A stretch of DNA of 64,000 bases, taken from Macrostomum lignano (lineage: Eukaryota). A program made the position numbers and the translations under genes. The stretch covers positions 65,096 to 129,095 of the forward strand of contig NIVC01001341.1 in the NCBI GenBank assembly GCA_002269645.1, in the 5' to 3' direction. Shown here one piece after another: positions 8,001 to 20,000 of this stretch (position 1 is the first letter of the stretch; each line of letters starts with the position of its first letter). The notes beneath the pieces are model-generated. The model saw only the letters and a program-made list of their open reading frames with translations. It was not told the origin of the DNA and did no database searches.

Positions 8001-11000
8001 TCACTCCTATCTGAGTCACTCTTATTAGTGACTCACTCTTATCAGTGAGTGCTAAGAGTGTGTGCCTGTTAAGTGTGTGCCTCTTATCAGTGAGTCACTC
8101 TTATCAGTGAGTCACTCTTATCAGTGAGTCACTCTTATCAGTGAGTCACTCTTATCAGTGAGTCACTCTTATCAGTGAGTCACTCTTATCAGTGAGTCAC
8201 TCTTATCAGTGAGTCACTCTTATCAGTGAGTCACTCTTATCAGTGAGTCACTCTTATCAGTGAGTCACTCTTATCAGTGAGTCACTCTTATCAGTGAGTC
8301 ACTCTTATCAGTGAGTCACTCTTATCAGTGAGTCATTCTTATCAGTGAGTCACTCTTATCAGTGAGTCACTATCTTATCAGTGAGTCACTCTTATCAGTC
8401 ACTCTTATCAATGAGTCACTCGTATCAGACAGTCACTATTAACAGTGAGTCATTTTTAGTGAGTTACTCTCTTATCAGTGATTCACTCTTATCAGTTAAA
8501 CAAATTTCTAATAATTGGGTAAATAATTAAATATATTGCCACAATGTCCTACAGTAAATCTTATCTAAAACTAAGAAACAATATCAATTTTCCAGCTGCT
8601 TTAATAAGTTCCTCAATCTGCCTCTCTGCAGTCTAACAGTACGCAACTGTTACCAGCATAGCTGCAGACTTTACTCTATTTTTGCATACATAGAGGCCAC
8701 CTAGAGACCTGCGCCAGGCAAAATATTGCGATTGCGATTGAGTTTAAGCTGATCAGCTCGCCACAATATGAGTTTTCTTACTTTCACCCTCTCCCCTTCC
8801 CTCTTTCCCAATTCCACCCATCTCCACAGGCTATCGCTTGATTTCACTCGCAGCAGCAGCAGCCGTGGTGCAGAAAATGAAAGAAGAAGTTGAAGGTTTT
8901 AGAGATGAACACGGCTGCTATGCTGCTTGTTGTGAGCGAGAGAAGGCACCAGGAGCAGGAGAAGTCGTGCAAATTTCGCCCAAGGCTGCTGTTCTCACTG
9001 CAAAATTTGCTAGCGAGATAGAAAAGCATTCAGTGTTTAAAAGAACTCAATTCGTCCCAGTATCTGACTTTCTAAACTGCCGATTTCCAAATGAAGCAAG
9101 TTGGTGCTTTGAGAGCGGCAACAGTCATAATACAGTTTTGTTTCCAAAACCGAGTTTGCAAAGATATGATCGAGAAAAAAATGCACTGAAGAGACCTTTT
9201 ATGAAAGGCAGCAGGCTGTGTGCACCCTGGCGCACTTTTAGCGACATTGTCACACAACCAGTGAGAGGCATTGCTGCCCCCATTCCGCCGACTCCCCTGA
9301 GCAGGCACACAAGCGCGCGGATACGTACGCAGTCATACGCGCAGGCACACACTCACACAGGAGTGTACAGCGGCCCTAACTTTATTTATCGTTAGGCATG
9401 TACACTTCACTGTGCCTTGGGGGTTGGGCCTCAAGGGCGTTAATTGCACGAGCAGAGATTCCAATGTAGCCACAAATTAATGTGACTGCACTTGGAATCG
9501 AGCCTGGGCCGCTGGCACATCAGAGCGCTGCGCTAGACCACTGCTTTGCTTGATTGCTTGCTGTCTCAGGTAGCTTAATTGATAAACTTGTTAGTTCTTG
9601 TTGTTAGCAAATGTTGTGCTACAGGCCGGATCGCGACTCTGATTACCAGGTACCTCAGTGAACGAGCCGAAGATGGCGTCAGTCAACTGGCCGGACTGAC
9701 TTCGGACTCTGAGCGAGGGATCGCGTCAAGAGACTTGATCAGCCCGTCCCTATTGCACGAATTAATCCCCGCCAGTCCCTCAAATAAGAAAAACGCGCGA
9801 CTCACTCTTTATCTTCACGAAGCAGCGGCAACGGCAGTATGGGAGGCTTCACTTAACTTCGCTGTGTCTTGCACAATTCAACCAAACAGATGCCTCCCCT
9901 ACCGCCGCTCCTGCACACATTTATATTTAATTAAACTAGCTGGTTAAGCCCTAGGGTATCGCTACCCCAGGCCCAGCTAGCCAAAATTACGATCGTCTTA
10001 TAAAAGTTACAAAGTCGGGATTGCGATTGGAGGGGGGGAAGAATACAAACCGATTGGCTGGGCCATCAGCCAATCGCAGGGCGAGCGAGGGGCGCACTGG
10101 AGCCGCAGCCAGCCAAAACCGGCTGACCTAACAGACAGTGAGGTGGGTGCAACTGGGGGGGGGGGGGTTGACGCAGACAGAATGGGGGGGGTTGACGCAG
10201 ACAGAATGGGGGGTTGGCGCAGACAGAATGGGGGGGGTTGACGCAGACAGAATGGGGGGGGGTTGACGCAGACAGAATAGAGGGGTTGGCGCAGACAGAA
10301 TGGGGGGGTTGACGCAGACAGAATGAGGGGGTTGGCGCAGACAGAATGGGGGGGGTTGACGCAGACAGAATGGGGGGGTTGGCGCAGACAGAATGGGGGG
10401 GGGTTGACGCAGACAGAATGGGGGTTGGCGCAGACAGAATGGGGGTTGGCGCAGACAGAATGGGGGGGGTTGACGCAGACAGAATGGGGGGGTTGGCGCA
10501 GACAGAATGGGGGGTTGATGCAGACAGAATAGGGGGGGGGGTTGACGCAGACAGAATGGGGGGGGTTGACGCAGACAGAACGGGGGGGTTGGCGCAGGCA
10601 CGCGGCCGGGAGGGGTGGGAGTGCAATGCCGGGCACACTTGACCAAGAGCCAGAGATTGCTCATCGGTGCAAGTGCACCCGGGCACAACACAAATACAGG
10701 CATTACTGGAGTTCTCTAAGCTTTTTCCAAGCCCATAAAGTACATGTACTACTGCTGAACAAAGATTTGTTTTATAGGTGTTTGCACAATTCTCATAACA
10801 ACAAAAAAGTCGCAATAACTGCTCACATTTTCACTTTTCTTGTTCAGGACGAAAGATTGCAAATAATTTACACCAACATGTGGCTTGACACAGTCAGTAT
10901 TCCATCTTTGCCCTGACTGCGATAATGCGATTGCATCGGTTGATGATATTTTTTAAATTTCGTAGCTTTGTTTTAATCTCTACTATAACACTCGGTAGTG

Positions 11001-17000: not shown

Positions 17001-20000
17001 AGTTTTGAACATGCTGAAATGCTATTTTGTTTTTGTTGTAACTGAGCAGATTGTATTCTTGGCGTCACCCTGTATTGGTGCAGTGGAATGTTGGACCTGT
17101 GCCAAACTTGCTACCATAGACAAAAGCTCCATTACTATATGTAACCATGTCTTGGAATAAATTCAATGTGTATAAGCCTAAATGGGCTGCAAAAAGCTAT
17201 AGAGTGCAGCATGGCTGGTAAGATTCTCTAGCAAGGTCTTGACCAAGTGAACAGTTGAAATTCATGTGTACTTCAACAAACAAATGCACACATTAATGCA
17301 TGTCTTCAACACGCACAACTGTTGAAATTTAATTTTCACGTTTAATCTGCTTGCAGCTTGTCTATCGATATATAGCACAATTAGCACGGTATATCCCATT
17401 CATTTTCGTGCAGTACGAAGTCACTTTTTTGATGATTTTTGACGTCTGGTTCCTGGTCCAGCTGCTCTAAAAGAACCCACCTTAGATAACCTTATTGACG
17501 ACGCGTCACGCGCACTAAAAAATGTTCGGTAAGGCAACACCCTATGCAAATTATCTGTGCAATTATTTAAATCTGACTGTGCTTTGCAGAGATGCCCTGT
17601 CAAAGATTCGCCATTACCTACGACTGCTGCCCGCATCCGTTCATAGATCTGCGATATCATATTAAGATCCGCAGGCGGACCCTATACTATGGCTTTAACC
17701 TCATCATCCCATGCGTGCTCATCTCGTCTATGGCGCTACTCACCTTCATCTTGCCGCCCGATGCTGGCGAGAAAATCTCTTTAGGTGCGTCCGTTTTTAT
17801 TAGAGGCATTTTAAGTAGGCGACATTGTCACACAACCGGCGAGAGGCATTACTGCCACCATTCCGCCGACTCCCCTGAGCAGGCACACAAGCGCGCGGAT
17901 ACGTACGCAGTCAAACGCACAGGCACACACTCACACAGGAGTGTACAGCGACCCTAACTTTATCTATCGTTAGGCATGTACACTTCACTGTGCCTTGGGG
18001 TTCGGGCCTCAAGCTGAGCGTTAATTTCACGAGCATAGATTCCAATGTAGCCACAAATTAATGTAACTGCACTTGGAATCGAGCCTGGGCCGCTGGCACA
18101 TCAGAGCGCCGCTCCAGACAACTGGGTGGGCTTACGTTCCTTTCAGTTTGATGTTTTTCAACGATTGCACCTTGCTAGGGCTATTGAGTGCAATATTTTA
18201 AAATTATATCTTCGAATACTTTAGAAATTGTGGCTGTTGGCATGACTGTCTGTCTGCCTTGGTTGACTGTCGTATTTTTTGAATGGATTCATCTCCACTA
18301 TTGCTTAGATTTATTCTAACAGTCCTACTCTGAAGTCCAATTTAAACTGTTTTTAACCCGATAAAAAATCTATTGGCATCGAGTAATGTAGCAGGTAATT
18401 TATATTTGTAACAATCGGAATAGAAAGCTTAGTTTAAAGTTGATATTTTTGTCATTTAATCAAACTTATTGTTGCATGAGCACTTTCTGTCGCATGCATT
18501 TCTATTATCTACCTGCTACGAGTTGTGTCGTAGCTACCTGCTCGTATAAGTTTGGAACTACACTAAAAGAAGTTTACTCGTAGCAAAAGACGTGTGTTTA
18601 TATCTAGCTTGTGTCTAACAGGTGTGTAGCTTGTGTCTAACAGGTGTGTGTAGCTTGTGTCTAACAGGTGTGTAGCTTGTGTCTAACAGGTGTGTAGCTT
18701 GTGTCTAACAGGTGTGTGTAGCTTGTGTCTAACAGGTGTGTAGCTTTTGTCTAACAGGTGTGTGTAGCTTGTGTCTAACAGGTGTGTAGCTTCTGTCTAA
18801 CAGGTGTGTAGCTTGTGTCTAACAGGTGTGTGTAGCTTGTGTCTAACAGGTGTGTAGCTTTTGTCTAACAGGTGTGTGTAGCTTGTGTCTAACAGGTGTG
18901 TAGCTTGTGTCTAACAGGTGTGTAGCTTGTGTCTAACAGGTGTGTGTAGCTTGTGTCTAACAGGTGTGTGTAAATTCTGTCTAACAGGTGGAGTTTCTAT
19001 GGTGCACACTCTAAACAGATCAACGAATTTGAAGTAAAAATTTTCACAAAAAAACTTACCCAGCACTGCGCACTGTTCTTACCTAAAACTGTAGTAGAAC
19101 ATAAGCCCATTCATAACTAGCTGTTGTAGCATGGCCTATATAATTTGCTATAATCTATAATTTGCAGTAAAAGTACATTTCAATGACAACTCTAGGAGTG
19201 ACAATAATGTTGTCGTTAACAATGTTTCAACTACTGGTGGCTGACGCAATGCCGCAGACTTCCGAAGCGGTGCCACTTATTGGTGAGCTAACAGTTTTAA
19301 AGCAAGTAAAAACAATTTTGTTTAAATCGTTTGCTGACTTCTCATTTTCAAAATAATTAATATCTTTTAATCATACGTAACAACGTCAATTTTGTTTAAC
19401 TGTAAGTTTAACGCGTTTTTTTATATTAATATTTGTTTTATTTAATTTATTTGAAAATCAATTTTGGCAAAACGATCCGGTCATTCCGTGCCTGCCAATC
19501 TTACCAGCCATGCACACTTTTTTAGTTTTTGAAAATAAATTGTTTCTAGCGATAGAACAGTGTAGGTGTGCGCGAAATACGTTGTAAAATTAATGACTTG
19601 ATAATCGTAAATTTTTGTTTAAATGTTGCAAAGCACAAATACAATGCAACGATTTTTTTGTTAATTTTCGATATCCTTTGTTTCTCACCTTCGCTATGGG
19701 ACAACATTCGAATTGGCGAGCACAGGTGTTACCATCCTGTTGTCCTTGACCGTGTTTCTCATGATGGTGGCCGAGGCCATGCCACCGACTTCGGATGCGG
19801 TTCCCGTTATTGGTGAGACAATGGGAGGGGGCACCGTTTATGCACTATTAATAACCTTTCTTGTCATTTTTGTTTTGAGTTTTATTTCGAATTTGTTTTA
19901 TTACTACTATTGGTTTGGCAATTTAAAGAATGTTTGAAATGAAAAATCACGTGGAATGAAGAGCTGCTTCCATGCAGATTGTTGTTAAATAGTGAATTGC

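Follow-up and report, generated by a model that had tools for sequence, protein, structure and literature searches.

Reading of positions 10000–21000 and translation of all + frames of a 64-kb stretch of Macrostomum lignano contig NIVC01001341.1 reveal an alpha7-like nicotinic acetylcholine receptor (nAChR) gene on the + strand at 7.7–24.4 kb, in which three exons are each present as a tandem pair (the stretch is called the window, and its coordinates are used unless a locus is named; P and L numbers label protein models and loci, respectively). Exon 2 (7742..7890; 149 nucleotides (nt)), which encodes the N-terminal helix and β1, is single copy and has AG/GT flanks. It is followed by exons 3a (10848..10892) and 3b (11684..11728), both of 45 nt and 15 residues, which encode a divergent and a canonical version of loop D, and by two single-copy exons, exon 4 (13933..14042; 110 nt) and the fused exon 5/6 (14569..14885; 317 nt), the latter carrying the Cys-loop. 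Exons 7a (16664..16858) and 7b (17590..17784), each of 195 nt, encode a divergent and a canonical version of the same segment, which comprises loop C with its YDCC motif, the membrane segment M1, the M1–M2 loop and M2 up to position 3′. M2 from 5′ to 20′ and the M2–M3 linker are encoded by exons 8a (19196..19282), of the flatworm 'LVAD..PQTSEA' type, and 8b (19726..19812), of the canonical 'LVAE..PPTSDA' type, both of 87 nt. The gene closes with the single-copy exons 9 (21228..21337; 110 nt), which encodes M3, and 10 (23739..24353; 615 nt including the stop codon), which encodes the intracellular loop and M4. Further upstream, a pattern search for an ATG-started hydrophobic open reading frame (ORF) ending in G/GT identified a candidate exon 1 (4955..5012, + strand), which would encode a 19-residue signal peptide, ends in phase 1 and has a GTGAGT donor; it joins exon 2 in frame, and paralog models begin similarly.

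The two members of each pair are equal in length and phase, and each of the six paired exons has AG directly before it and GT directly after it. Spliced models built with all a or with all b exons both give an uninterrupted frame of 541 codons from exon 2 to the stop. Identity within pairs amounts to 8 of 15 residues for exon 3 (24/45 nt), to 38 of 64 residues plus a shared split codon, or 39/65, for exon 7 (122/195 nt), and to 19 of 28 residues plus the split codon, or 20/29, for exon 8 (63/87 nt). This similarity is far above chance, with tblastn E values within the window of 2e-24 for 7a/7b, 1e-9 for 8a/8b and 8e-4 for 3a/3b; the same search shows no third copy of exon 3, 7 or 8 within the gene. 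The coordinates, lengths, phases, AG/GT sites, open frames and pair identities given in a first-pass annotation of this DNA all proved exact, and its finding that exons 2, 4, 5/6, 9 and 10 are single copy within the gene was reproduced. We also agree with its placement of the pairs at loop D, loop C plus M1 and M2, and with its view of the b copies as the canonical ones.

Both the all-a and the all-b model match the Pfam families PF02931 (Neur_chan_LBD; E = 1e-63) and PF02932 (Neur_chan_memb; E = 1e-50 to 1e-53). The Cys-loop encoded by exon 5/6 has the form C-x13-C, and vicinal cysteines of the alpha type (YDCC) are present in 7a and 7b alike. Human alpha7 is the nearest relative of solved structure (E = 1e-113, versus ~1e-84 for alpha4, alpha3 and muscle alpha), while the closest database proteins are all from M. 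lignano. The exon sizes (45/110/195/87/110) and all phases reproduce the layout of vertebrate CHRNA7, from which the flatworm gene differs by the fusion of exons 5 and 6 and by an insertion of ~24 residues that lies past the Cys-loop and ahead of loop C; no exon of CHRNA7 is known to be doubled. Judged by these features, the gene encodes an alpha7-like (insect alpha5/6/7-group) nAChR subunit of M. lignano.

Available protein models show which exon versions have been joined. The UniProt model P0003 (A0A1I8JFT5) matches window exons 4-5/6-7a-8b-9 without a single difference (273/273 residues), and P0128, a near-identical second copy, makes the same choice of 7a and 8b, the sole combination modelled for the window gene. 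Exon 9 is joined in these two models to differing internal points of exon 10 (23739–24353), with part of the intracellular loop skipped, which reflects either alternative splicing in the loop or a modelling artefact. The GenBank annotation of assembly Mlig_3_7 (BOX15_ names) was derived not ab initio but from RNA-seq, with StringTie/TACO, and from a transcriptome assembled de novo (PMC5730564). Its models P0018 and P0009, which belong to a paralog termed here gene A, follow the path 2-3b-4-5/6-7b-8a-9 and skip the exons 3a′, 7a and 8b, indicating that a single member of each pair is selected, with b and a versions mixed. The 3b peptide is identical in the paralog transcripts P0002 and P0018, and the paralog version of 8a is in use in P0009, P0018 and P0002. 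RefSeq isoforms X1, X2, X3, X4 and X6 of the nemertean Lineus longissimus are all 480 residues long and have their exon 3, 4 and 7 versions swapped in free combination. Every transcript-based or RefSeq-supported model of the window gene, the paralog and the nemertean orthologue thus contains one exon per pair. The earlier suggestion that a exons, or b exons, are used together does not hold for these models, which combine 7a with 8b in the window gene and 3b and 7b with 8a in the paralog, and mix versions freely in Lineus.

Gene A (loci L008 and L002 of assembly Mlig_3_7) possesses 3a′, 3b, 7a, 7b, 8a and 8b in the order of the window gene, all flanked by AG/GT. Its upstream exon 3 copy (L008 21732–21776) is identical to window 3a at just 8 of 15 residues. 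Other paralogs show different sets. In P0002 (L001), exons 3, 7 and 8 occur once each, as the 3b, 7b and 8a types, and two further genes, known as the models P0001 and P0006 only, both contain 7a-like and 7b-like segments, with both 8a- and 8b-like segments in P0001 and an 8a-like one alone in P0006. Four M. lignano paralogs have intact a-type exons. When the window gene is compared with gene A, the proportion of synonymous differences (pS) is saturated at 0.63–0.87, whereas that of nonsynonymous differences (pN) is 0.17 for 7a, 0.14 for 7b, 0.03 for 8a and 0.04 for 8b, to be compared with 0.14 and 0.02 for the constitutive exons 5/6 and 9. Saturated pS together with low pN in a and b copies alike argues that both copies of exons 7 and 8 have been under purifying selection since an old duplication, and such selection in both genes is hard to reconcile with exons that are not used. 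The three-pair layout is, by this measure, older than a gene duplication that is now saturated at synonymous sites. The first-pass proposal that duplication proceeded exon by exon, is old and was followed by selection is supported.

Comparable pairs are present in other phyla. Orthologous loci were fetched and their exons located by tblastn, overlong gene models having given the first hint of tandem copies. The annelid Capitella teleta has two copies each of exons 3 and 7 and single exons 4 and 8, while a second annelid, Owenia fusiformis, and the brachiopod Lingula anatina have two copies of exon 7 and one each of exons 3, 4 and 8. Exons 3, 4 and 7 are all doubled in the nemertean L. longissimus, which has one exon 8, and the gastropod Gigantopelta aegis has two copies of exons 3 and 8 and one of exons 4 and 7. 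In the trematode Opisthorchis viverrini, exons 3, 4 and 8 are single, exon 8 being of the a type; its two exon 7 copies (L009 44610–44801 and 45644–45835) are 100% identical including flanking intron bases, and this doubling is probably an assembly artefact rather than an a/b pair. In every pair found, the divergent copy lies upstream and the canonical copy downstream. Copies of the a type of exon 7 occur in the M. lignano paralogs, Lineus, Capitella and Owenia, and a divergent upstream copy in Lingula; window exon 7b is 73–75% identical to its Lineus and Capitella counterparts. A HMMER search with 7a in all libraries returned more genomic fragments, some with an exon 7 of the a type and others with tandem a-type and b-type copies, in that order. 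Annotated isoforms differ in exon 3 in Tubulanus and in exons 3 and 8 in Limulus. The system, of which the first-pass annotation knew no example outside arthropods, thus extends to an annelid, a nemertean and a gastropod, which have pairs of exon 3 or exon 8. The exon 7 pair, for which it had known no precedent, recurs in Lineus, in both annelids and in Lingula. An exon 7 pair may exist in arthropods too, as exon 7 and exon 8 segments are each present twice in models from the barnacle Amphibalanus (P0020) and the termite Cryptotermes (P0012). In an exon 7 tree, the barnacle and termite upstream copies cluster with 75% bootstrap, and the termite downstream copy groups with Drosophila alpha6 (69%). 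The Gigantopelta locus also contains an intronic minisatellite (L007 16220–17239) in which the 3′ end of exon 4 and its donor (..WKPDILMYN/GTAAG) are repeated ~20 times.

Taken together, these data support well, if indirectly, a mutually exclusive use of the exons within each pair, which we regard as probable. Both versions of every pair are presumably expressed from the window gene; the figure of up to 8 isoforms is, for this gene, arithmetic and not an observation. Several points weigh on the other side. P0003 and P0128 are UniProt entries of uncertain evidence level that lack exons 1–3 and are oddly spliced inside exon 10, and protein searches, including one with an all-a query (exons 2–9), returned no model in which 3a, 7b or 8a of this gene is included. 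Several public models (P0001, P0005, P0011, P0016 and P0020) contain both members of a pair in tandem, and double inclusion, which keeps the frame, is possible. Scans of the introns for docking/selector pairing and inverted repeats gave just a transposon-like hairpin and A/T-rich matches (for example 21186–21205 with 19518–19533, 19654–19668 and 19867–19884), and comparison of the introns of the window gene with those of the paralog yielded no conserved intronic element beyond dispersed repeats. As for the both-member models, most look like ab initio prediction artefacts: P0001, P0005 and P0008 carry, besides both members of a pair, linkers derived from introns.

Splicing might nevertheless be alternative without being strictly exclusive, transcripts with both members or with neither being made as well, especially for the 45-nt exon 3. 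Exon lengths that are multiples of 3 would leave double skipping as well as double inclusion in frame, the intra-pair introns of 443–791 nt set no steric bar to a–b joining, and P0001 has no exon 3 while several models have both copies. A precedent comes from Bombyx alpha6, which reportedly gives transcripts carrying 3a followed by 3b as well as transcripts lacking both (PMC2045683). For exons 7 and 8, however, a second M1 or M2 would invert the membrane topology, so that doubles would not be working subunits, and RNA-seq-based models and RefSeq isoforms take exactly one exon per pair. We consider relaxed exclusivity of this kind unlikely. Also quite unlikely, in our judgement, is that the choice is fixed in each gene and diversity is divided among paralogs, the window gene always using 7a+8b and gene A always 3b+7b+8a, with the unused twins as leftovers. 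Such partitioning does occur in flatworms, since the twins are genuinely gone from P0002 (L001) and from the trematode orthologue (L009), both of which retain exons of the 3b, 7b and 8a types, and the models found do show one combination per gene. Unused exons, on the other hand, would not be expected to hold their frames, splice sites and a pN of 0.03–0.17 across saturated divergence in both genes and for four exon 7 and 8 copies, and the Lineus orthologue has annotated isoforms with both versions of a pair. That the upstream a exons are decaying pseudo-exons still open by chance is very improbable, and for 7a and 8a largely refuted: the a copies are divergent, and 3a is without transcript support and poorly matched by the upstream copy of the paralog, but P0003 and P0128 include 7a, trematodes and P0002 have no exon 8 other than the 8a type, a-type exons are intact in several phyla as well as in the four M. 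lignano paralogs, and their pN is as low as that of constitutive exons.

Three ways of enforcing mutually exclusive choice were considered and rejected. A frame shift followed by nonsense-mediated decay is ruled out by lengths of 45, 195 and 87 nt, all multiples of three; steric hindrance is ruled out in the window gene by intra-pair introns of 791, 731 and 443 nt; and incompatibility of U2 and U12 splice sites is ruled out by donors that are all of the GT(A/G/C)(A/C)G type and acceptors that are all AG, every site being of the U2 GT-AG class. Competing RNA pairings, trans-acting regulators or selection against non-functional products with both exons would remain as options. In other species introns are far shorter, with ~72 nt between 7a and 7b in Owenia (L004 53811–54269) and ~52 nt within the exon 4 pair of Lineus (L005 72553–72819), of which both versions are used in RefSeq isoforms; steric exclusion is possible for these two pairs.

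The introns of the window gene are rich in repeats. The 7a–7b intron contains a transposon-like long imperfect hairpin with arms at 16932–16999 and 17115–17183, and a related peptide-coding remnant lies near 21620–21710. A dispersed repeat of ~330 bp is found at 9228–9543 and 17794–18126, one copy beginning 10 nt past the exon 7b donor, and again on the opposite strand in a paralog intron (L002 2946–3269). Large minisatellites are present in every intron that flanks a pair (7999–8496, 10161–10597, 12022–13503, 16018–16432, 18605–18990 and 19965–21102); one of them, between 3b and exon 4, has 86 copies of a 17-nt purine-rich unit. The three intra-pair introns contain none.

Comparison of the paired peptides, with residue roles taken from alignment to alpha7 and general knowledge of the family, suggests what the alternative exons would change. 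By taking one exon per pair, splicing would yield up to 2 × 2 × 2 subunit versions from one gene. The choice of exon 3 would alter loop D, which contributes to the agonist site from the complementary face; the loop D tryptophan is retained in 3a and 3b, and its neighbouring residues vary. Exon 7 would act on the principal face through loop C and, beyond it, on M1 and the cytoplasmic mouth of M2. The Y-x-CC motif and the PPDAGEK ring are unchanged between its versions, and M2 positions 1′–3′ read VSF in 7a and ISL in 7b. The choice of exon 8 would alter the pore-lining M2 positions 8′, 13′, 15′–17′ and 20′ together with the M2–M3 gating linker: 8a and 8b differ by M/L at 8′, M/V at 13′, Q/L at 15′, LL/MM at 16′–17′ and D/E at 20′, and their linkers are PQTSEA and PPTSDA, respectively. 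Homopentamers can be built from alpha7-like subunits, both faces of the binding site then coming from every subunit, and in such an assembly the three modules would tune agonist recognition, gating and permeation. The versions would be expected to differ in pharmacology, gating and conductance, those of exon 8 in conductance and gating and those of exons 3 and 7 in agonist pharmacology.

The age of the pairs was addressed with a neighbour-joining tree of exon 7 (65 residues) and a tree of exon 8 (29 residues), exon 3 being too short for a tree. All spiralian a copies of exon 7 form one clade; bootstrap support is 88% for the four Macrostomum 7a exons, falls to 70% once Lineus and Capitella are included and to 40% once Owenia and Lingula join them, and the b copies are placed with the canonical exon 7 of other species. 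Seven derived columns in the M1 half are common to most a copies, among them K after RRR, L for M and V/F at M2 1′/3′. Two observations leave room for separate origins. Identity fails to separate 7a from 7b, since values between species are 48–60% for a–a and 51–63% for a–b comparisons, and a–b identity within species is 54–69%; moreover, both Lingula exon 7 copies carry one shared one-residue insertion. Parallel duplication with convergence is possible, as is gene conversion that affected part of the exon, the half with loop C. Because identity does not separate a from b, we grade the common descent of 7a down to likely: the exon 7 pair of flatworms, nemerteans and annelids likely has a common origin. 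For exon 8, flatworm 8a groups with the sole trematode exon 8 (71% bootstrap), which places the 8a/8b split before the divergence of Macrostomum and trematodes, parasitic flatworms having kept only 8a. The 29-residue tree gives no supported link of the flatworm a and b variants to mollusc or arthropod variants. A far broader scenario can be put forward tentatively, and we hold it to be doubtful: the exon 3, 7 and 8 clusters would all trace to a single alpha7-like gene with combinatorial splicing that was present in the spiralian, or even the protostome, ancestor, different clusters having been lost in each phylum, with the insect Dalpha6 clusters as remnants of a programme more than 500 million years old and Macrostomum as the only sampled lineage that keeps all three.

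The alpha6/alpha7-like subunit, the target of spinosad in insects, is the best-known receptor diversified by mutually exclusive exons, and adenosine-to-inosine (A-to-I) editing is prominent in Dalpha6. Insect alpha6 has the mutually exclusive exons 3a/3b and 8a/8b/8c, whose duplications have been dated to before the radiation of insect orders (PMC1919356). The flatworm gene resembles Dalpha6 in its subunit group (45–48% identity between the window gene and P0105), in the positions, lengths and phases of the loop D and M2 exons, and in the tandem duplication of exons whose versions are used in combination; the positions of these two pairs correspond to alternative segments in the Dalpha6 variant P0105. 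It differs by the additional pair for loop C and M1, which has not been described for alpha6, and by two exon 8 versions instead of three. The Lineus gene (XP_064652926, XP_064652936, XP_064652944, XP_064652952 and XP_064652968), known from automated annotation alone, is the closest relative found outside flatworms. It shares the exon 3 and exon 7 pairs, with the a type (RRRKLY.., GEKVSF) upstream and the b type downstream and one used at a time, and differs in having an additional exon 4 pair and a single exon 8. An exchange of pore segments by splicing also occurs in NALCN, a channel of another superfamily, whose alternative selectivity-filter exons are described from invertebrate lineages (PMC3557258).

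A full-text literature search, of incomplete coverage, gave no description of mutually exclusive exons 3 and 8 outside insect alpha6, and a search of likewise incomplete coverage gave no paper on a 7a/7b (loop C/M1) pair in nAChRs. In Bombyx alpha8, what is termed the alternative 'exon 7' is a TM2/TM3 exon, and the subunit is a different one. Splicing is not a topic of the main lophotrochozoan nAChR survey (PMC6896357), and titles and abstracts of papers naming Macrostomum together with nicotinic receptors contain nothing on exon pairs. The non-insect pairs are visible in automated annotation and have no description in the literature searched, although an earlier one is possible. A splicing system described only in insects is probably much older and wider. 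If so, its presence in flatworms, nemerteans, annelids, brachiopods and molluscs would point to an old, repeatedly retained form of receptor tuning rather than an insect peculiarity, to which the exon 7 pair would add a third swappable module comprising loop C, M1 and the inner pore mouth. P0002 and the trematode gene, each with one exon version fixed, would exemplify splicing diversity traded for gene duplicates. Macrostomum lignano is amenable to transgenesis and could serve as a test system for how exon choice is made and what each module does.

Other features of the window include a PDZ-domain gene (~40200–44900, + strand) that adjoins the receptor gene. A PDZ gene (PF00595) also adjoins the paralogous receptor gene on L008 (1–3087, − strand), and the PDZ neighbours of both receptor genes may point to segmental duplication as the origin of the paralogs. 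Another nAChR-like gene, more distantly related, lies at 56674–63150 on the + strand, with exon-like matches at 56674, 58252, 59346, 62042, 62652 and 62956–63150. It has a single exon 3-like segment at 58252, and tblastn within the window revealed no exon pairs in it; M1 and M2 are contiguous in 62956–63150, which indicates an intron layout different from that of the first gene. An element resembling a long terminal repeat (LTR) retrotransposon occupies ~29600–39450 (+ strand). It contains long gag/pol-type ORFs at 30850–37932 with an integrase-like motif and is bounded by direct repeats of ~1.1 kb, as deduced from identical ORF peptides at 29599–29946 and 38345–38692 and at 30401–30535 and 39148–39282.

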